The notes under the pieces were generated by a model that had not been told where the DNA came from, made no database searches, and saw nothing but the letters and a program-made list of their open reading frames with translations. A stretch of DNA of 64,000 nucleotides from Malacoraja senta. Lineage: Eukaryota. Position 1 is the stretch's first letter. Each line of letters opens with the position of its first letter. Positions 3,792 to 62,764 of the stretch are shown here, in pieces. Position numbers and translations under genes: made by a program. Location: NCBI GenBank assembly GCA_038087875.1, contig CM075996.1, positions 1 to 64,000 of the forward strand. Reading direction: 5' to 3'.

Positions 3792-6700
3792 GTAAGTAGG
3801 TGGTATTCATTCTCAGCTTCTGATGGTTTTATTGGAAAAGTCAATATCAAAGGTGAAACTCGAAAGAATGGTGAATATTAGATCACTTTTCAAGGTTCTT
3901 AAACTGAGTTTGCAGTAGCAGTACTGTAAGACCTTGTTCAATTCTAGTGAACAAGCTCTGTTCAAGACCGCAAGAAATTACAGACAGTTGTAGATGAAAT
4001 CCAGCAATTGCACAGACCAGACACTCTACCCCTGACACCATCTACCCTTCATACTGCCTTTGCTCTCTATTGTACTCCAGTTTCACTTGATTGTATTTAT
4101 GTATAGTAGTATCTGATCTGATTGGATAGCAAGCATAATAAAGTTGTTCACTGTACTTAGTTACACATGACCATAATAAACCTAAACTTGGTGATACTTT
4201 CTTGAGACAAGGTCATGCATCAAAGGAGATAAAAAAAGAGTGAAATCCTTGTGTGCACAATGCACAGATTCTGTTTCCTGACCCAGTGGAATTACCGATT
4301 TTTGGTACTCATTTATAGAAATACTGGATAGAAACTCACCAACTGAGGACAAACCATAAATGTGAGCATATCTTGACACATAATACCTCTAGAAGAAAAG
4401 CATTAAAGAGACAGTTATTGTTGCCAATCTCATGACGGTGGTTGCAGCAAGCTGTACTGTCTGGGATTTTTCTCCTTTCCAGGATGGCTCTCGAGGTATT
4501 CAATTACACAGAGGCAGATAATCATAATTATTTCCCCCGATGGCGATTCGTTTTTCAAGTAATTATTTATTATGGACAATAGTTGGCCACTTGATTTAGT
4601 GCAAGATTAACAAAAAACACCAAATCAACATTTGGAGAGGGAAATTAGACTGGGTGGCATATTGGCATAACGGTAGAACTGCTGCCTCACAGAGCCAGAG
4701 ACTGCTTCAATCCTGAGTAAGAGTGCGCTCTGTGCGGAGTTTGTACAGTGCCCTCCATAATGTTTGGGACAAAGACCCATCATTTATTTATTTGCCTCTG
4801 TACTCCCCAACTTGAGATTTGTAATAGAGAAAATCACAAGTGGTTAAAGTGCACATTGTCAGATTTTAATAAAGACCATTTTATACATTTTGATTTCACC
4901 ATGTAGAAATTTATACAAAGTCCCCCATTTCAGGGCACCATAATGTTTGGGATACAGCAATGTCAAGTAAATGAAAGTAGTCATGTTTAGTATTTTGTTG
5001 CATATCCTTTGCATGCAATGACTGCTTGAAATCTGCGATCCATGGATATCACCAGTTGCTGGGTGTCTTCTCTGATGATGCTCTGCCAGGCCTGTATTGC
5101 GGCCATCTTTAGCTTATGCTGGGCTAGTCCCCTTCAGTTTTCTCTTCAGCATATAAAAGGCATGTTCAATTGGGTTCAGATCACGTGGTTGACTTGGCCA
5201 TTAAAGAATTGACCATTTTTTAGCTTTGAAAAACTCCTTTGTTGCTTTAGCAGTATGTTTGGGATCATTGTCTTGCTGTAGAATGAACTGCCGGCCAATG
5301 AGTTTTGAGGCATTTGTTTGAACTTGAGCAGACCGACAATAGGTGCAGGAGTAGGCCATTTGGCCCTTCGAGCCAGCACCGCCATTCACTGTGATCATGG
5401 CTGTTCATCCACAATCAGTACCCCGTTCCTGCCTTTTCCCCATATCCCCTGACTCCGCCATCTTTAAGAGCTCTATCCAACTCTCTCTTGAAAACATACA
5501 TAGAATTGACCTCCACTGCCTTCTGAGGCAGAGAATTCCATAGATTCACAGCCCTCTGTGTGAAAACGTTTTTCCTTATCTCTGTTCTAAATGGCCTGCC
5601 CCTTATTCTTAAACTGTGTCCCCTGGACTCCCCCAACATCGGGAACATGTTTCCTGCGTCTAGATAGGATGTCTATACACTTCAGAAATCATTATGCTAC
5701 TACCATCAGCAGTTGTATCATCAATGAAGATAAGTGAGCCAGCACCTTCAGCAGCCATACATGCCCAGACCATAACACCCCCACCACCGTGTTTCACAGA
5801 TGAGGTGGTATGCTTTGGATATTGGGCAGTCCTTCTCTCCTCCATACTTTGCTCTTGCCATCACTCTGATATAAGTTATTTTTCGTCTCATCTATTCACT
5901 AAACCTTTTTCCAGAACTGTGGTTGCTCTTTTAAGTACTTTTTGGCAAACTGTAACCTGGCCATTCTATTTTGCATCTTGCAGTGTAGCCTCTGTATTTC
6001 TGTTCATGAAGTCTTCAGTGGTCATTGACAAATTCACACCTGACTCCTGAAGAGTGTTTCTGATCTGCCGGACAGGTGTTTTGGGATTTTCTTTATTATA
6101 GAGAAAATTCTTCTGTCATTAGCTGTGGAGGTCTTCCTTGGCTTGCCAGTCCCTTTGCGATTAGTAAGCTCACCAGTGCTTTCTCTCTTCTTAACAATGT
6201 TCCAAACAGTTGATTTTGGTAAGCCTAAGGTTTGGCTGATGCCTCTAACAGTTTTATTCTTGTTTCTCAGTCTCATAATAGTTTCTTTGACTTTCATTGG
6301 CACAACTTTGGCCCTCATGTTAATAAACAGCAATAAAAGTTTCCAAAGGTGATGGAAAGACTGGAGGAAAGACTAGATGCTGAGAGCTCTCTTATACCTG
6401 CATTAAGGAGGCAATTAAACACACCTGAGCAATTACAAACACCTGTGAAGCTATGTGTCCCAAACATTATGATGCCCTGAAATGGGGGGACTATGTATAA
6501 ACACAGCTGCACTGTATGTTGTCCCTGTGACCGCGTGGGTTTCCTTCGGGTGCTTTTATATCCTCCCACATACTAATGACGTGTGGGTTTGTAGGTTAAC
6601 TGGTCTCTGTAAATTGTCCCTGGTGTGTAGGACATAGAGCTGGTATATAGGTGATTGATGGTCGGTGTAGACCTGAATCCACCTTGATAGAAACGTAGAA

Positions 6701-9700
6701 CACATCATTCTACATCGATTATTTTCACTTAACTAACCTAACCAGATCCAGTCTAGGGTTTTTGAGAGCCTAATTGGACAAATTCATTATAACTTGAAGT
6801 TCAAATGTTCAAATCCTGGCTACCGATGAAATGACAGGAATCAATCAAATTTTGCATTGTTGTGGCCACATTTCCTCTTTGTTTTATCACGCCAACAATG
6901 ATTTGTTCATGGGATTATTATTCTGCATGTTCACGGTTGGCTCAAAGTTCAATCAGTCAGCCCCCCGGAGATGCCAGCTGCTGAAATATAATGGGTAACA
7001 GTCTCAAGATGGTGGCAATTAATTAATGCTGTTTGCTGAGTAACCAAGATTTAGTTAGGATTACAAGCTTTCTTCATTAACGACCATTGTTTACTTCATA
7101 CTACCATACTTCAAGATGGTTTCAGGTTTCTTGAATCTATAATCATAGAGTCACAGTCATTCAGCTCGGAAACAGACCTTTCAGCCCAACGTCCATGCCA
7201 CCAAACGCTGTTTCGAAGCTGTCCTATTTCATCATGTTTGGCCCATATCCCTCTAAACCTTTCCTATCTCTGTAGCTGTCCACGCATTTTTTAAATGTTG
7301 TTATTGTACCTGGCTCAACTGCTTTCTTTGGCAGCTCTATTCCCCTGCTTATGTTCCTCTCATGATATATACCTCTATAAGATCATCCCTGAGCCTCCTG
7401 TGCTCCAAGAAATAAAGTGCTAGCAATAGTATTTAACTTGCATGTAAACATTTCTCATGGTTAACAGTGTTCAAGATTAATTTTCCTCTCTCTGATTTTT
7501 ATTTTCAAAAATTAAATGATTAATTTTATCAGGTTGTGTGTTGGTAGATTTTACTTTTCCTTCTCTTCTGAATGTCATACCCAGAAGTATATATTATCAA
7601 AGTGTCAATTGTGTTGAAAATTGGTTTTAAAAAGCCATTCAAATATAAATGTACATTTTTCTTGGAGATCTTTAAGATGTTTTTTTTTTTTTTTTCTAGA
7701 CACAAACCCTGGGGCTGCTGGTTCAAATTATGCAAATTCTGCTTGGGGTTCTGGATCATCCAGCACTGACCTCAACCACGGCTGGGATAAGTTAATCGTA
7801 GACGGGTCTGATATGGAGGCTTGGCCTTGCATCACAGGCAGAGACTCTGAGTCGGCTTCGGAACACGTAGATAACGAAGGTGCCTCAAACCTTAGCTCTG
7901 AGAAGAGCCTGCCACCTGGAAGTGGCGCTGCCAGGAATTGCAAAGGAGCTGCAAACCAGTTTGCTGCTGGGAGCGGAAAGAATGAATGTAAATTGGGGGC
8001 CTGGAACATGGGCCTTGTGCCTAAACCCAGTCACGCATCTTCCATCTCTTCGGAGAGCAAAGACGGACTTAACAATTGGAAAAACTTGAGCAGCCCTGAT
8101 GGAACTGGCCTTGGGTTGACCTTGAACCCAAATATCAACCCATCGGCCTGGCCAGTATTGGGCCAGGAGGGCACTTCTGGAAAAGGTACTTTGGAGACGG
8201 ACATTTCGAGCTCCAGTGCACAACTTAGTGCAGTAGGTCAAAGCCCTAGGGATCAGGATGGTACTTCTACAAGCGCCTGGGCAAAACAGTCTAAAACGGA
8301 AAATGCGGGTGTTACATGGAATGCTTCTGTTGGAGAACAGCCTCAAGCTCTTAACACTGATGGACCAAATAATGGCGACACTAACTCTTTGAATGCAAGC
8401 TCACAGAGCACCGGGAACCCTTTGCAAAATAAGGGAGTGTCTGAAACAACAGGGAATGGGACCTGGAGCATGCCCTTAGGAATGAGTTTGGGAAACCCCT
8501 TGGTATTGAATCAATCTGTGAGCACTGAAGCCTCATCCGAAGGCAGTATTAGAGGAACAATGGAGGGACGGGCAACTGGGGGTTCTTGGAATACAGTTTG
8601 GGGATCTTCTGGAACCGATTCCATTTCTGGACAAAATGGTACAGGAGCTGATGGCAATAATGGACGCAGTGGCGATGATGCAGCAAAAAATGGCTCTGGT
8701 ATGAAACAGTTACTGGTGAATAGATCAAGAACTGAATCATGGGACAATAATGGTGGATCCTGGGACTCTGAGACACAAGACCCCAACAAAGCAAAAAATT
8801 GGGGTAAAGGGAACAGAACAGCATCTGGTAGTGCTCAGGGTTTATGGGGTCAACAGCCAGGGACTGATAACCGGTCAGAAGGAGATTGGGTTGCCTCTAC
8901 TAATGAACAGAATTGTGGCACAGGCGGATGGGACAATCACAGGGTAAATCCCCCCCCAGAAAACCAAGGAGAGAATGCCCAAAATTCCAGCTGGGTAAAG
9001 GCCTCTAGTTCCACTGGGAGTGACTCTGGTAGTCGAAACAACAACAAAAAAGGAGGCTCTGACAACCACCCAGGAGGACGGCGCTTAAACAAGGCTGATC
9101 ATCCTGACCAAGAGGAAGTATTGCAAACTGTAATAAACAGGGCTGATCTAGACCCAAGGGTGCTGTCAAACACTGGGTGGGGCCAAACTCAGATAAAGCA
9201 GAACACAACTTGGGAAGTCCAGGAGTCACCCAGGAATGAGAGGCGCACTGACAAAGGAACAGAAGGGTGGGAGAACACTGCCACTCAGAGCACTAACTCA
9301 GGGGGCTGGGGCGAAGGGCCCAGTCAAACCAGTCGCTGCACCTCTGGGTGGGGAGATGCTCCCCAGTCTTCAAACATGGAGTGGAAGGATTCAAAGACTC
9401 CAAGTGGATGGGTGGACCCAAAGAACAGTCAAGGTTGGGGAGGTGGAACACCAGAAGAGAAAGCACCATCTTGGAATGATGGGCCTAGAACCAAGGAACC
9501 GGGTTGGGGTGCAAGGCAGCAACAAACGCAAGGATGGCCTGCCAATAATGGCTGGGGTGATGGAAGTGGACAGCCAGCTGAGCAACCAAAAGCAGGTGGC
9601 TGGGACAGTTCAAACTCGAGATGGGGTGAAAGTGGCCGTGGTGATGTAGGATCTTGGAGTGGTGGCAGTAGTTCTAATACTAATCAAAGAGGTGGGTGGG

Positions 9701-12700
9701 AGGACCCCACAAGACACCAGGGATGGGGTGAGCCATCCAAAGCAACCACTTCTAATTGGAACAAGCAGCAAGAGGTATCTGGTTCCTGGGGCACCGCTTC
9801 TGCTAATAGCCGACAGTCTGGGCCAGGTTGGGGCTCAGCACCTGTGCCACCGATGCCCTCTTCAGCTGTCCCACCTGCAACCATCCCAACTTTGCCAAAG
9901 GAAGAAGAATCTACTGGATGGGAAGAGCCTTCGCCGCAATCTATCTCCCGAAAGATGGAGATTGATGATGGCACCTCAGCCTGGGGTGATCCCACTAGCT
10001 ACAATTATAAGAATGTGAATCTGTGGGACAAAAACTCTCAAAATGATAGCTCTGGAAGTGGGCCGATACAACGGGAGCAGAATGCATCAAGTGCGGTTAC
10101 AGGACGAGGATCCACATCAAGTTCTGGTAAGCAGTTACTTGCAAATTCTTCCCCTTTTAATTATTATTTGATGATCGTTGTGTTCCATATTGCACTGATG
10201 TTGAAAGGAAGCTGAGAGTGAAGTGAGATTCTCTGTAGATGTTTTTTTACATGGCAGCTTTTTTACTACAGTGAAGTATTGTAGGATCTGTCTTTCTCGA
10301 TTTTCTTGTGGTAAAATATCTTGTTTTCGCATGGGATGGAATTGCTAACTACAAATGCCCTGACAATATTGGGGATGGTTTATTCTCAATTGTAAAGCCA
10401 CATTGCATTCCCATCTCATTCAGTTCTTTATGCATGGTAAAGTACTTTTGGCCATTGTTGAAAGTAATTTTGTTGAGTCATCATTTGTTTAAAAGGACGA
10501 CTTTTAAACAATTCCCTTTGAGAGGCCATGCTGTGTATGCAGTGTGTTAAATTTGAATGAAGAAGACCCTTCTTTAATTTTGTCTACCTGACATGTCAAA
10601 TTTGCTAAAGAGTTTAACTTTTTTTAATCATGTCTAGTATGGTGATCTGAACTATCCTTCCCTGCAGCATTTTCAGCAGTTGATTTGCCCTAATGTGCAG
10701 CTTATATTCAACAGATGGAGGCAAACAATCATAGATTAAGACTGTGGCATTTCTCTGCACTCCTGATGCATAATTCTAAAATGTTTTTTCCATCTTTACA
10801 TCCCCATAAGTTATTCTCTGACCAGACACATTTTCCAAGAAATTATAATGTAACAACAAGGAACTACAGATGCTGGTTTACCAGATGACCCGCTGAGTTA
10901 CTCCAGCATTTTGTCTTTGAAGGAAATTATTCCAGGACTAATTTCAGCAACACCCAAGTAGGCAATGCTCAGTTCTGAAACAGATGAATGTGGTTTCCAA
11001 TTTTTCTCAGAGACAGGAGCACTAACATCTAGGCCAACGTTCCTTTACAGCACTGTGGGGGTTCTCTCTTTATTAAAAGGCATATAACTGAGGTCTCATC
11101 TGCTTTCTCACGTAAAAGATCTCATGGCAAGTTTTTAATGAAACGATGAGGTGATGTCCCCAGTGATAATCATCCCAGTCAATATCAGCAACACAATTCA
11201 TCCAATGATGACTTTGCTGTTTGTGGGAGGTTTCCATGTATAAATTGCATATTTGCTGTAATTTCCTGGATTATAACAGCGGTGACACTTCAAAAGTAGT
11301 CATTGCCCCAAAATACTGCACATTCTGAAAGGAACGTGGAAGACTTTGTAGACGTTTTGGTTGCCCTCTCACAATATTAGCTGACAAATTATTTAATTTG
11401 TTATGACTACCTTAATTTGCATTGATCACCTTGTAACGTAGATATTTTTCCAGTTTTTAGTACAAAATGAATTGTAATAAATTTGATAGCTGTTCACCCC
11501 AAGGGGTCTCCCCTATTTTCTTGACAATGGATTGCATTAATTTTGTTTGTGATCTGTGCTTCAATCTAAGAAACTTTAAATACGATTGTTGCCCTTGTAT
11601 GAATAACTACTTTATGCCAGCTCTCCCATCTTCCAAATTACAATTGAGTTACTGCCCTACACGGAAACTTGGCAGCGGGTGCAGTCTGATGCCAGGAAGT
11701 CCAGATTGCAGTTTATGCATACACAGACTTCTTTGTATTGTACAAGTTGTACCTCCCCTTGCTGGGAAAAGAATCTCTGGATTTCATAAGAATGTTACAA
11801 GTTTCTATCTGATCATAATAACCAACAGAAGAAATCCTTGTTTTTGGAATCTTGAGTTGGTGTGCATTTTGATTAAACAAAGTGAACCTAATTGGAAGTG
11901 TGCTTAAATCTGAGTCAGCATTCTACTTTGGGATATTAACAAAACACTGTGGAAAGTATAACTGATTCCTTCTGGTCAATGGAAGATCCTTTAAAATGAT
12001 TTTTCAAAAATGTTATTAACATGGCTTGCTTCCAGTTGTTAGCTGACAGCAGTGCTCACAACTTTGACCTTAAAATACAAACAGCACCCTTGGATTTGGC
12101 TGTGTTAGCTAAATGGAAAGATCCTATCTTTCATGTAACGTGCTTGTCTAAAGTATTTCCTTTAACAATGGTGACCATTGCAAGCTGACTTTATTTTTCT
12201 GGTGCATTGTCTGCAGTTCCATAGGGATACCCAACGTTGGTTTCCTAAATATCAGCACTCTGCAGTGCAGTTGCAAAGCAGCAAGCGAAACTTAATGCCC
12301 CGTTATAAAGGTGAATGGGAAATGAGTGTTTCATTTGAGCCACTGCCATACCACTTTTTAAATTTTTTATGGGGTTTAAAATAGTTGCTAATAAGAGCAA
12401 AAGTAGTGAATTAAACCTACATCTGTACGTCTGCAGGACATTCAGGTACTTTTTTTCCAATCTATATTTGTGCCTATTCAAATAGAGATTTGATCTCATA
12501 TTTTGATATGCCTCTGACTGACCGATTCAACATGCATCAGGTAAATAAAACGTATTTCAGTTTCACTTATCGGGTCACTTCAGAGTGAATGTAACTGAGC
12601 CGAGCAGTACTGTCTGAAGGGAGCTGGGATGGGAGGGTAAATGCAGGCTGGTGGAAGGGAATTGGTTGTTGGAGTTTAGGGCAGGTCATGCTACAGGGAA

Positions 12701-27700: not shown

Positions 27701-30700
27701 TTTGCGCTCAATTAATTCCTTTTAAAAACAAAAGACACAAAGTGCTATGGCGACTCGGTGGGTCAGGCAGCAACCCTGGAGAATGTTTTGGGTCGGGACC
27801 CTTCTTCAGACAGTAACACAGCAAATGAATGATTTTGATTAATTGCAGGTTCCTGCCCCCATGTTAAAGCATACCACTCCGAATGGTGCCCTGAACCCAG
27901 CCTTGTTTAGCCTTGGTCCTCAACTAACCCCTCAACAAATAGCTATGCTCAGCCAACTCCCTCAGCTCCCACAGCTACAGTTGGTGAGTATCACATGTAT
28001 ATCATAGCAATTACATATTTTCTAATAGCTGTATCATCTCCGTCAACCTCGACTAATATCTATCGATTATCGACACAGAAAACGAATATGCAGAAGGACC
28101 ATGGTGCCACACCTTTGAGAGTGGCTTTACATTTCTGTTTGTTGTTAAGTATTAATTTGATTTTTTTTTTCCCCTTTGGTAATTTCATTTTTGCTTCATT
28201 AAAACTTCAAAGCCTTGCACATATTTACAGTGCTCTCCACAATGTTTGGGACAAAGACCCATCATTTATTTATTTACTCTACGCCACAATTTGAGATTTG
28301 AGAAAAAAATCACGTGGTTAAAGTGCACATTGTCAGATTCAATTAAAGCGTATTTTTTAATACATTTTGGTTTCACCATGTAAAAATTACAGCAGTGTTT
28401 ATACATAATCCCCCCATTTCAGGGCACCATAAAGTTTGGGACACAGCAGTGTCATGTAAATGAAAGTAGTCATGTTTAGTATTTTGTTGCATATACTTTG
28501 CATGCAATGACTGCTTGAAGTCTGCGATTCATGGACATCACCAGTTGCTGGGTGTCTTCTCTGGTGATGCTCTGCCAGGCCTGTATTGCAGCCATCTTTA
28601 GCTTATGCTTGTTTTGGGGGATAGTCCTCTTCAGTTTGCTGTTCAGCATATAAAAGGCATGCTCAATTGGGTTCAGATCGGATGATTGACTTGGCCATAC
28701 AAGAATTGACCATTTTTTAGCTTTGAAAAACTCCTTTGTTGCTTTAGCAGTATGTTTGGGATCATTGTCTTGCTGTAGAATGAACCGCTGGTCAATGTGT
28801 TTTGAGGCATTTGTTGGAACTTGAGCAGATAGGATGTGTCTATACACTTCAGAATTCATTATGCTACTACCATCATCAGTTGTATCATCAATGAAGATAA
28901 GTGAACCAGCACCTGCAGCAGCCATACATGCCCAGGCCATTACACCCCCACCACCGTGTTTCACAGATGAGGTGGTACGCTCTGGATCTTGGGCAGTTCC
29001 TTCTCTCCTCCATACTTTGCTCTTGCCATCACTCTGATATAAGTTATTATTCGTCTCATCTATTCACTAAACCTTTTTCCAGAACTGTGGTTGCTCTTTT
29101 AAGTACTTCTTGGCAAACTGTAACCAGGCCATCCTATTTTTGTGCTAACCAGTGGTTTGCATCTTGCAGTGTAGCCTCTGTATTTCTGTTCATGAAGTCT
29201 TCTGACAGGTGTTTGGGGATTTTTCTTTATAATAGAGAGAATCCTTCTGTCATCAGCTGTGGAGGTGTTCCTTGGCCTGCCAGTCCCTTTGTGATTAGTA
29301 AGCTCACCAGTGCTCTCTTTCTTCCTAATGATGTTCCAAACAGTTGATTTTGGGAAGCCTAATGTTTGGCTGATGTCTCTAACAGTTTTATTCTTGTTTT
29401 TCAGTCTCCTAATGGTTTCTTTGACTTTCATTGGCACAACTTTGGTCCTCATGTTGATAAACAGCAATAAAAGTTTCCAAAGGTGATGGAAAGACTGGAG
29501 GAAAGACTAGGTGCTGAGAGCTCTCTTATACCTGCATTAAGGAGGCAATTAAACACACCTGAGCAATTACAAACACCTGTGAAGCCATGTGTCCCAAACA
29601 TTATGGTGCCCTGAAATGGGGGGACTATGTATAAACACAGCTGTAATTTCCACATGGTGAAACCACAATGTGTAACAATTGCCTTTAATAAAATCTGACA
29701 ATGTGCACTTTAACCACATGATTTTTTTTTCTATTACAAATCTCAAATTATGGAGTACAGAGGCAAATAACTAATGATGGGTCTGTCCCAAATATTATGG
29801 AGGGCACTGTATTGGGTGGTATGTTACAAGGCTAGCACAATGCACTGTGAGTGTACAGTCTTTCGGGAGGAATGGCAATTATAATGAACAATTAAATTCC
29901 TGTCCCTTTGCTCTGCTGCTCTTTTATATAACCAAGTAAGCAGGAGCAAGAATCTGGTCTCCCCTTTCATTGTGATTTCGTGTCTCTAGTTCACTCTGAA
30001 CTCTCTTCACACAGGCTTACCAGCTGTTGCTTCAACAACAACAACAGCAGCAAGTGCTGCAAAACCAACGGAAGCTGTCTGCCGCAGTCCGACAACAACA
30101 AGAACAGCAAGTATGTGATTATAAAGATAGTGAATCTCTTGCAAACCCCCTGAACATTTTTTGTCAGTGTGGTGAATGTTTTTCAGTTTGGGTGCTTTGC
30201 AGGATAGATGTGGAAATAACATTTCTCCTGATTGGAGTGTCTAGAACCAGAGGTCATGGTCTCAGTATAAGGGGTCAGCCATTCAGGGTAGAAATAGGTA
30301 GTTTCTCCACTCAGCGCCACGGTAGTGCAGTGGTAGAGTTGCTGCCATAGAGCTCCAGAGACCCTGGGTCGATCCGAACTAAGGGTGTCTGTAAGGAGTT
30401 TGCACGTTCTCCCTGTGACCGTGTGGGATTTCTGTACAAATCCAAAAGACGTGCAGGTTTGTTGGTTAATTGGCTTCTGTAAATTGTCCCTTGTGTGTGT
30501 GATAGAACTGATGTACCGTTGGTCGGCGTGGACTCAGTGGGCCGAAGGGGCCTGTTTCCACATTGTATCTCTAAACTTAAAAACGAAACTGAACATCCAG
30601 GTGGAAGCAGATTGTTGGTATTCTTCATCCAAGAAGCTTGTGGAAACTTAATTGCCGAGTATATTCAAGACAGATGCAAAAATGTCAGATATTAGGGAAA

Positions 30701-36700: not shown

Positions 36701-39700
36701 CATTTCCCACGCATGTACCAGTCCAAATGTCTTTTACATGGTGTCATAGTACCTACCTCAACTGCATCCTCTGGCACCTCGTTCCATTTACCCACCATTC
36801 TCTGTGGAAAAAGTTGCCCCTCAGGCTCCTATTAAATCTTTCCCCCCTCACCTTAAACCTATGTCCTGTTCTTGCTTTTCCCCTACTCTGGGTGAATGAC
36901 TTAGTGCATTGATCCTATTTATTACCCTCAAGATTTTATAACCTCCTTAAGATCACCCGTGTACGCTTCAAGGAAAATAGTCCTAGCCAGTCCAGCCTCT
37001 CTGTATAGTTCAGGCCCTCAAGCGCTGGCAACAGCCTTGTAAATCTGCACTCTTTTCAGTTTAACAACATCCTTCCTATAGCATGATGACCAAAACTGAA
37101 CACAATAGACAATAGGTGCAGGAGTAGGCCATTCGGCCCTTCGAGCCAACACAGCCATTCAATGTGATCATGGCTGATCATCCCCAATCAGTACCCCGTT
37201 CCTGCCTTCTCCCCATATCCCCTGACTCCGCTTGTTTTAAGAGCCCTATCTAGCTCTCTCTTGAAAGCATCCAGAGAACCGGCCTCCACCACCCTCTGAG
37301 GCAGAGAATTCCACAGACTCACCACTCTCTGTGAGAAAAGGTGTTTCCTCTTCTCCGTTCTAAATGGCTTACTCCTTATCTCCTAACTCCAAATGAATAC
37401 TCCAAATGTGACCTCCCCAATGCCATGTACAACTGTGCTTTATAGGACAATATATATTGCTCTTTATAATTCATGTGATATATAATATGAAATTTGCTGT
37501 GCATTGTTTTAAATTAAAATGTAATTAAGCAGATTATGTTGTACATAAACTACATTGTTTTCTGCAATAAAGTTGAAGAGGCAACACATGGGTTAAGTTA
37601 GACAAAACTATAATTTCAATTCTATGTGTTCCTTCTAAACACTGCAATTCCTTCCTTGTTTTATTATATTCCGCCCTTAGATCCTCTACCTTCTCAGTTT
37701 CCTTGGTCCAAACAGTATTCTTTCCCTTTCTACTATGCATAATATCGCGATTCACTGTTATGGGGGTTCTACTAATACACAATTTTGTTTCTCTGACTTT
37801 GTTGGTAAGATTGACTTTAGGAATGCAAGATGAAACTGATTAACTGTTAATTTGATAATATTTGCACTTTCCTACAAATGTAGAGTAGGGATTATTAGAG
37901 ATGTGTGCTAAAATCAATTTTCCTTTTTGTTTTATACTTGTACGTGAATCTTTAGAATGATTTTAGTATATTATGGTGTTGTTTGGCCCCCTTAGTTTGG
38001 GGATTTTGATTCAGTCTCGCTGGTTCTTTTGTTATATTAACCGGCTTATGATCATGTTGTTCCAGCCAAGTTCAGTGACTTCAAGTCGACGTGGTCTCCA
38101 GATCCAATTGGACATCCCAGGATGTGGAAAAATCAGATGTCATCTAAAAACACTAACCCGCCAACACGGCCGCCACCAGGACTGACTAATCAGAAACCTC
38201 CGTCATTTCCGTGGGGCAGTGGAACGCCCCGGTTCAGCAGAGGATGGGGCATGCAAGAGTCACGATATGCCCTTAGTGCGTACCTTACTACCTGTTTTTT
38301 CGCTCATCCGTATTCTGTCTCTCTATATCTCTTTACCCAATTCAAAGTTATTCTATCAGATTAATTCCGTGGGTTCACATCCTTGTTTTGGGTATGCATA
38401 CATAATTAGTGAAAGGACATCCTAAGGCTCGCGTCAAGCCCTGACTCGGTCCAGCTGAACTCTGTGGCTGAAAAATTGTCCTGGGAGAATGAAGATCTAT
38501 ATACATGTTTAGGCTGATCTCTTCTCCAGTAAGGAAAACATATTGATCAGATGGTAAATTGGATGGTGCAATGTATGGGTTTAATCCTGACAAGTACAAG
38601 GTGACATATTTTGGGATGGCTTGTAACGATAGGGCTACACCATAAATGGTGGTGTTCTTAGGCAGTATTGATCAGAGGGAGCATGTCCCTCAAGGTGGCA
38701 GTACAAGTAGGTAAGGTGGTGAAGAATACACTTGAGGTGAGGTCTGCATTGGAATATAAGAATGGGAAGAGCATGGTGCAACTTTAGCAAACCTGGTTTA
38801 AGCCACACTTTCTTCTTCTTCTTGCATATGGCGTGCACAGCCTAAAGTTGTAGGACAACTTGTTCTATTTGATCTTATTTGATTGTGCACACCAGGTTGA
38901 TTGCATTTGTCGAAACAGGGCGGACCACATGAAGGTTGCAATCTCCCACCCCAAGCCACAGCTGGAGTATTGTGTGTAGTTCTGGTTGTCGATGTACAGG
39001 AAGATCACACGAGGGTGCTGGAGATTTACCAAGATGTTGCCTTGGATTGAATGCCTCAGTTATGAGGAGAGGCTGGACAGGTTGGGTTATATTTCAAGGG
39101 GGGGGGGGGGGGGGGGCTGAAGGGGAACCTGATAGATGAGTACAAAATTATGGGAGGCATGGATAGGGTGGATGCTGCAATTAAGAATGTTGTTATTCTG
39201 TTTTGGGACCTATGACAATAAAACCCTCTTGCTTTCACTCTTGATGTCTAAAACTAGGGGACATGGGTTTAAAATGAGGGGTAAAAGGGTTAAAGGGGGT
39301 TCAAGGTAAAAATAAATGGATGATTGGAAACTGCCTGAGAAGATGGTGAAGGCAGGTTTACTCACAACATTTAAAAAGATAAAGTACTTGAATTGCCAAG
39401 GCATATAAGGTTATGGACTAAGTGGTGGTAAATGGGATTGGTATAGATGTGTATTTGATGCTCAGAATGGACACTTTGGGTCAAAGAACCTGTTACTGTT
39501 GTATGACTCAAAATGCTGTATACCAGATGCGGCATCCTCTGGAGTGGCATTAAATCAAGGCATTGAATCCTCGAGCAGAAGTAAAAGAAGCCACTATTGG
39601 CTTTTACAAACAGATTTTGCAGTCAGCCAGATTGTGTTTCTGTTCACGGAATTTTGCTGCGCTTGTATTTCCTTGCAATACTCACAGCAATTGCATATCA

Positions 39701-57408: not shown

Positions 57409-62764
<5,356 letters not shown>

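Follow-up and report, generated by a model that had tools for sequence, protein, structure and literature searches.

The window considered here, that is, the whole stretch of 64,000 nucleotides at the start of contig CM075996.1 of the skate Malacoraja senta, contains at 38808-38952 a 145-bp segment that raises two connected questions: whether it is a mobile element, and whether the RNA read from its minus strand begins with a self-cleaving ribozyme. A sequence-only reading of the window had answered both in the affirmative, proposing that a minimal ribozyme of the hepatitis delta virus (HDV) type forms the exact 5' end of the element. In the present analysis the segment is regarded, with good confidence, as a recent copy of a non-autonomous retroposon without long terminal repeats (non-LTR), which is very abundant and is carried by skates and related species, and the structure predicted for its head suggests that the element frees itself from host transcripts by RNA cutting.

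The 145-bp insert is bordered on either side by AAGCCACA, an 8-bp target-site duplication. Logan contigs from four runs were compared with the window at 38650-39110. A contig of organism E at single-copy depth (27.5) joins 38802 to 38956, leaving out 153 bases, which is the sum of the 145 bases of the element and the 8 bases of one duplication copy; five letters at the junction are ambiguous and belong to the duplication. A contig of organism B, likewise at single-copy depth (11.7), reaches 38807 and goes on with the letters that follow the second copy of the duplication. The pre-insertion sites of both organisms are clean and hold one copy of the octamer each, and both filled junctions are spanned by contigs of organism A with zero differences. 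Orthologous sites that are empty in two species show the element to be mobile and the insertion of the 145 bp, with its target-site duplication, to be real.

The family to which this copy belongs is large. The summed word depth over the element was 1.4e5-5e5 in run X1 and rose to 1.1e6 in X3 and 4.7e6 in X25, while the depth of the single-copy flanks in these runs was 3.7, 11.7 and 27.5, respectively. The family depth is 10^4-10^5 times that of the flanks and corresponds, as an order of magnitude, to 10^4-10^5 copies, the summed depth not being itself a copy number. All 12 sampled 31-mers of the element were present in runs of organisms B, C, D, E, F, G and J, that is, in at least seven organisms, and most of them were also found in organism H and in runs labelled RNA. 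On the head side, the loose ends of family contigs pile up at 38952/38953 in three DNA runs (80 + 105 contigs in X1, 53 in X3 and 139 in X25), and the consensus beyond these ends is unrelated and AT-rich (agreement about 0.35). This indicates that the 5' end of the family is the base G1 at 38952. The ends on the tail side are ragged, with loose ends at 38810-38817 and loose letters continuing as CTTC, and the length of the tail therefore differs among copies.

The head can be read as a succession of pairings (P), joining segments (J) and a loop (L). On the minus strand from 38952 it begins with GGGGUGG (38952-38946), which forms the 7-bp P1 with CCGCCCU (38923-38917) and includes the wobbles G1.U36 and U5.G32. 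J1/2 (GA) is followed by GAUUGCA (38943-38937), the 5' strand of a perfect 7-bp P2 that is closed at the far end of the head by UGCAAUC (38905-38899). ACC (38934-38936) and GGU (38924-38926) make up the 3-bp P3 around the 7-nt L3, UUCAUGU (38933-38927). After the 3' strand of P1 comes GU, the G of which gives a one-pair P1.1; P4 is reduced to the 5-nt linker UUCGA (38910-38914), and J4/2 is CAAA (38906-38909). The order of the segments, P1-P2-P3-L3-P3'-P1'-(P4)-J4/2-P2', is that of a nested double pseudoknot and is the same in 19 related ribozymes described below. When the three family-majority letters are put in, the fold of lowest free energy for the head is the nested part, P1 with P3.

A sequence-agnostic HDV-like descriptor was run on both strands of the window. 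It called for G1, P1 of 7 bp, P2 of at least 6 bp, P3 of 3 bp and L3 of 7 nt, and the only letters it required in addition were C3 and G6 of L3, the G after P1' and the C opening J4/2. It gave a single match, with G1 at 38952, and 0 matches in 40 first-order Markov randomised windows. The C that opens J4/2 is shared by 19 of the 19 relatives in the descriptor parse and by 18 of 19 in the MAFFT alignment; the last base of P1', which is the U at 38917 that forms the wobble with G1, is T in all 20 aligned sequences. On these grounds the head is predicted to be an HDV-type double pseudoknot with P4 almost gone. Every part of the sequence-only reading that was open to a check has held up: the length of 145 bp, the 8-bp duplication, the coordinates and all the pairings proved exact on direct reading; the mobility is borne out by the empty sites in organisms B and E, and the coincidence of the ribozyme with the exact 5' end by the place where family contigs break off in three DNA runs (38952/38953); the HDV-type fold with almost no P4 was recovered by the descriptor, the parse and a covariance model of phage theta ribozymes.

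The copy in the window departs from the family majority at three positions (38929, 38908 and 38891), all of them CpG sites. Two of them lie in the head, and the suggestion that they are CpG-type transitions from motifs like those of the CPEB3 ribozyme agrees with the family, 95% of the depth carrying UUCACGU and 77% CGAA. The majority L3, UUCACGU, is identical to that of all 19 related ribozymes; U24 of the present copy occurs in none of the phage ribozymes and its A45 in one of them (L158). Having U24 and A45, the copy at 38808-38952 may be impaired as a ribozyme relative to the majority sequence. In its letters and predicted pairings, the family-majority head lacks none of the features of those minimal HDV-like ribozymes that are proven.

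Variants reaching at least 5% of depth were found in the head at 38908, 38911, 38921, 38928 and 38929, and all five are CpG positions. The variant at 38921 changes U5.G32 to U5-A32 and keeps the pairing, and no variant at this level was seen at the C of J4/2, at G1 or at the P1.1 partners. At 38908 another 14% of X1 depth has A, which gives CUAA in J4/2. The second position of J4/2 is G in 54-77% of the depth in DNA runs of organisms A, B and E. In run X17 of organism D, apparently labelled RNA, the same position is U in 46% and G in 34% of the depth, which suggests a CUAA subfamily that is dominant in organism D or in its RNA.

Close relatives of the skate head came from a metagenome scan with a pattern made up of P3, L3, P3' and P1' only. 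Two AT-rich, eukaryotic-looking contigs were found, with ribozymes at L001:854-908(-) (JACSEG010032002.1) and L002:598-652(+) (JACSEG010039345.1). Their P1 is as in the skate element, and their P2 is GAUGACA/UGUCAUC as against GAUUGCA/UGCAAUC in the skate. P2 lay outside the search pattern that retrieved the two contigs, and it differs by two double compensatory changes, with a G.U pair in L001 in addition. The P1 pair 5-32 is seen as U.G or as U-A. In this small sample the predicted HDV-like pairings are supported by covariation. The idea that L001 and L002 are copies of a long interspersed nuclear element (LINE) was rejected: neither shows a LINE open reading frame (ORF), and the likeness to the skate element is confined to the head.

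A second set of relatives belongs to phages. The looser pattern ACCTTCAYRTGGT-N7-GTTT (ACC-UUCAYRU-GGU-N7-GUUU) was searched in viral and prokaryote genome collections. Most of its matches are due to chance (119 of 120 in prokaryote genomes and 73 of 90 in viral contigs), and paired matches 117 nt apart at L125 and similar loci were dismissed as a coding tandem repeat that holds no ribozymes. The complete P4-less fold, with segment lengths as in the skate head, was present at 17 viral sites and at one site of a prokaryote genome bin. All 12 sites that were checked against transfer RNA (tRNA) predictions start within one base of the 3' end of a tRNA or a transfer-messenger RNA (tmRNA), and they are therefore theta ribozymes. 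In L164:5516-6018 (viral contig IMGVR_UViG_3300028734_000021), a theta-type ribozyme at 5962-6018 directly follows a tmRNA gene predicted by ARAGORN (5516-5961) and not a tRNA.

In the MAFFT alignment of 20 ribozymes the 5' strands of P1 were out of register because J1/2 plus P2 vary in their length; the explicit parse and a covariance model of equal-length sequences were used instead. The model, built from 11 equal-length phage theta sequences only, with P1 and P3 paired, matched the window at 38897-38952(-), starting from G1, with 31.6 bits and E = 6.9e-5, and this was its sole significant match in the window. L001 and L002 scored 49.6 and 49.7 bits. The part of the comparison with phages that is independent of the search is the surrounding fold and spacing. 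Four theta ribozymes that were assayed self-cleave with Mg2+ and are dead with a C-to-U change (Kienbeck et al. 2024, PMC10879173).

Downstream of the head, the 3' module has a minimum free energy of -22 kcal/mol with z = -3.2 (200 shuffles). Variation within the family is concentrated at two places in it: the hairpin, where it affects the loop and the closing pair (38851-38855), and the outer stem, where CpG sites are affected (38890, 38891). The module is presumed to be the recognition site for a partner reverse transcriptase. The features of the insertion are collected in Table 1.

Table 1. Features of the retroposon copy and its borders (positions in the 64-kb window; variant rows give the change from the present copy to the family majority on the strand shown)
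Feature	Position	Strand	Basis or remark
Target-site duplication copy beside element tail	38800..38807	.	Direct reading of AAGCCACA; octamer single in the empty-site contigs of organisms B and E
3' microsatellite tail, (AAG)n, RNA-sense end AAAG, 16 nt	38808..38823	-	Direct reading
3' module, 75 nt	38824..38898	-	4-nt linker, then 71-nt structure: 11-bp outer stem around 7-bp hairpin
Majority letter A>G	38891	+	86% of X1 depth; C-G pair of the outer 3' stem restored
Predicted minimal (P4-less) HDV-like ribozyme head, 54 nt	38899..38952	-	Direct reading, descriptor, folding, phage-theta covariance model
Majority letter T>C	38908	+	77% of X1 depth; RNA A45 -> G; J4/2 = CGAA
Presumed catalytic cytosine, first base of J4/2	38909..38909	-	Matches the invariant C of aligned theta ribozymes; no variant of at least 5% in four runs
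Majority letter A>G	38929	+	95% of X1 depth; RNA U24 -> C; L3 = UUCACGU
G1, predicted cleavage site (5' of the base) and family 5' end	38952..38952	-	Loose-end pile-up at 38952/38953
Target-site duplication copy beside element head	38953..38960	.	Direct reading; Logan contigs

The gene around the insertion can be recognised in part. A glycine- and tryptophan-rich (GW-rich) ORF of 864 codons lies at 7621-10215 on the plus strand; its best named look-alike is a TNRC6B cluster (0.82, Atlas), which is weak and serves as a lead only, and Pfam found nothing in this ORF. It is apparently the large Argonaute-binding exon of a gene of the TNRC6/GW182 family. The GW-rich TNRC6-type gene is on the plus strand, and the element is therefore antisense to it. 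The sequence-only reading had placed the element antisense to TNRC6B; the orientation is confirmed, and paralogue B is a lead only.

The right flank of the insertion (38954-38990) is part of another very abundant repeat, with a summed depth of 1e5-7e5, about 1/3 to 1/7 of that of the element; the element landed within an older repeat. BLAST of the reconstructed empty site against the 64-kb window found no second copy of this host repeat, a comparison of the element itself with the window turned up neither a second copy nor anything similar, and Tandem Repeats Finder reported nothing around the insertion site. A run of 23 G at 39098-39120, inside the host repeat, is the source of the weak Rfam row ZEB2_AS1_3; this row and Phage_DGR, the two Rfam rows obtained, are at chance level only. 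Elsewhere in the window, the ORF at 28476-28964 on the minus strand has a DDE_3 transposase domain (Pfam E = 3.8e-9) and is a remnant of a Tc1/mariner-type DNA transposon. The whole-window Rfam scan at gathering scores found no hammerhead family, including at a candidate core in a Penelope-derived repeat at 59405-59432.

A life cycle consistent with these features can be proposed. The RNA of the element would correspond to the minus strand and would consist of the 54-nt P4-less HDV-like ribozyme, the 75-nt stem-loop module and the (AAG)n tail. It seems to have no recognisable promoter of its own, and source copies would be transcribed inside longer transcripts. The head would fold into the nested double pseudoknot and, to judge by the family features, cleave 5' of G1; cleavage would free an RNA with G1 as its first base and its 5' end buried in a compact fold. 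The endonuclease and reverse transcriptase of a partner LINE would recognise the 3' stem-loop and the tail; target-primed reverse transcription would copy the RNA through to its first base and leave the 8-bp duplication.

Several observations weigh against this proposal. Rfam cmscan of the region (E <= 10) left the HDV, CPEB3 and other drz models all silent, so the check with the Rfam HDV and CPEB3 models advised by the sequence-only reading gave no match even at this threshold, and the scan of the whole window at the gathering score reported no ribozyme family; the silence is probably due to the absent P4 and to the pseudoknots being left out of the models. Sites with variants of at least 5% number 5 in the 54 nt of the head and 9 in the 91 nt of the rest of the element; by this measure the conservation of the head does not exceed that of the 3' module, and it therefore offers no evidence of selection on the head in particular. 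Similar variation in the two parts fits a young family in which both of them matter. Because the core of the skate sequence supplied the search pattern for the phage set, 15 letters are shared by construction. In the metagenome pair, L001 and L002 are homologous to each other from about 280 nt upstream of G1 to about 165 nt downstream of it, which makes a repeat of about 450 nt with the ribozyme internal to it and not at its end. No LINE with the 3' module of the element was found in the 64-kb window by BLAST, and the runs labelled RNA consist of assembled contigs and indicate presence only.

The sharpness of the 5' boundary is a further point of this kind, as it would be equally expected from a fixed transcription start, and it bears on an explanation in which the HDV-type fold is real and comes from the 5' end of a LINE but no longer cuts. 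The compact 5' structure would then protect the RNA, bind the partner protein or act as an internal promoter. The HDV-like ribozymes of R2 and L1Tc do have extra roles (PMC6765202, PMC3383444), the first 77 nt of L1Tc being both promoter (Pr77) and ribozyme. However, the family majority keeps every conserved position, namely the C of J4/2, C22 and G25 of L3, the G1.U36 wobble and the G after P1', and the catalytic C is unnecessary for a purely structural role. This explanation is considered rather unlikely.

Still less probable, and considered very unlikely, is an ordinary short interspersed nuclear element (SINE) transcribed by RNA polymerase III (Pol III) from an unrecognised internal promoter, with a ribozyme-like fold that is incidental. 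A length of about 140 nt, the copy number and a uniform 5' end are typical of SINEs, and UUCGA at 38910-38914 has a faint likeness to a B box. However, ARAGORN found no tRNA-like structure in the element, Rfam at E <= 10 found no match of it to 5S, 7SL, tRNA or small nuclear RNA, there is no A box, and it cannot be by accident that the element has the whole double pseudoknot and shares its core with theta ribozymes. By its sequence the element seems to fall outside the Pol III class of SINEs, which have a small-RNA-gene head and an internal promoter, and the earlier statement that a Pol III-type head is lacking was upheld by both searches. A last explanation is that the resemblance arose by chance, or that a ribozyme confined to this locus regulates the host TNRC6 gene. 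The silence of Rfam would suit either; the single descriptor match against none in the randomised windows, the many thousands of copies in several species, the absence of the insertion at the orthologous site in two of them and the antisense position of the element relative to the GW-rich gene reduce this explanation to a negligible one. The ribozyme-headed retroposon is the reading retained here.

Should the head cleave, tens of thousands of natural copies of a minimal HDV-type ribozyme exist in skates and their relatives, and minimal HDV-like ribozymes leave the phage-only box in which the survey of 2024 had put them. There would be a clear case of a vertebrate retroposon that owes its 5' end to RNA self-cleavage and not to a promoter, and its thousands of decayed copies would constitute a large natural mutational data set for a 54-nt ribozyme. 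Each sense copy in an intron or an untranslated region would be a potential site of transcript cutting, and a bias in orientation relative to genes would be a testable signature of selection. The family would also provide a concrete candidate source for the CPEB3 ribozyme, whose origin is unexplained. A broader version, in which minimal P4-less HDV-like ribozymes extend beyond phages, a vertebrate retroposon family and its LINE partner have carried a CPEB3-like core (L3 UUCACGU, J4/2 CGAA) in tens of thousands of copies, such retroposon heads formed the pool from which mammalian CPEB3 was recruited, and promoterless spread proceeds purely by self-cutting from host transcripts, is speculative and, taken as a whole, doubtful.

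The CPEB3 ribozyme resembles the skate head in its HDV-like fold and in its L3, UUCACGU, which is the majority sequence of the skate family. It has GU after P1 and CGAA in J4/2. Unlike the skate head, it has a full P4 and a GCG/CGC P3, and it occupies a single conserved intronic locus in mammals. The skate element stands outside the CPEB3 class, being a multi-copy retroposon in a TNRC6-type gene, with a 5-nt linker for P4 and with the Rfam CPEB3 model silent. The mouse CPEB3 ribozyme contains GTTCACGTCGCGGCC (primer in PMC10274809), in which L3 reads UUCACGU.

Non-autonomous non-LTR elements headed by ribozymes are already known. In trypanosomatids, NARTc and RIME, the partners of L1Tc and ingi, are like the skate family bipartite and non-autonomous, keeping the 5' HDV-like ribozyme and the 3' end of a LINE; their ribozyme releases the element from longer transcripts (PMC3185411, PMC4035085, PMC3383444). 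In contrast to the skate family, they are protozoan, longer and present in far fewer copies, and their 77-nt head has P4 and doubles as a promoter. The R2 SIDEs (short internally deleted elements) of Drosophila share with the skate element a 5' self-cleaving HDV-like ribozyme, a 3' end that binds the reverse transcriptase and the lack of an ORF (PMC3414825); unlike it, they are specific to 28S ribosomal DNA, co-transcribed by RNA polymerase I, low in copy number and equipped with large ribozymes. Vingi and RTE LINEs likewise have bipartite non-autonomous derivatives, in which a 5' end is joined to a 3' end (Kojima 2018, PMC5786205). LINE clades with 5' ribozymes tend to yield such bipartite non-autonomous derivatives, and a ribozyme is not listed for Vingi in the same work (PMC5786205). 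Promoterless RTE and baggins elements, as well as L1Tc/NARTc, are thought to work via HDV-like ribozymes, and some metazoan non-autonomous SINEs are stated in a review to use them (PMC6765202).

The searchable literature yielded no vertebrate family of such ribozyme-headed retroposons, none of the P4-less theta type and none this abundant, and nothing relevant was found there that links HDV-like ribozymes with sharks, skates or Vingi. The novelty claimed in the sequence-only reading can accordingly be kept for the vertebrate, P4-less, high-copy version, which appears to be unreported, and not for the kind itself, given NARTc/RIME, the R2 SIDEs and the metazoan SINEs.

In structure, the nearest known system is found in gut phages of the Caudoviricetes. 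Of the theta and minimal HDV-like ribozymes reported by Kienbeck et al., nearly 99% were confined to Caudoviricetes (PMC10879173), the eukaryote search of that work having covered only complete RefSeq genomes together with human and mouse; minimal HDV-like ribozymes of the drz-Mtgn type are also on record (Riccitelli et al. 2014, as cited in PMC10879173). Theta ribozymes and the skate head have in common a nested double pseudoknot that lacks P4 and measures about 54-58 nt, a 7-bp P1 closed by G1.U, a P2 of 6-9 bp, the P3 ACC/GGU, the L3 UUCACGU of the skate family majority, GU after P1', a U-rich linker of 5-6 nt in place of P4 and a J4/2 of the form C-N-A-A. ARAGORN found no tRNA in 38700-39060, and the theta-type context is absent there. 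Judged by its predicted structure, the skate head has the theta core and keeps to the theta sequence constraints, and by its context, a retroposon in a vertebrate intron, it is not a theta ribozyme. Theta ribozymes follow directly on tRNA genes of phages and serve to trim the 3' trailers of these, whereas the skate head stands at the top of a eukaryotic retroposon.

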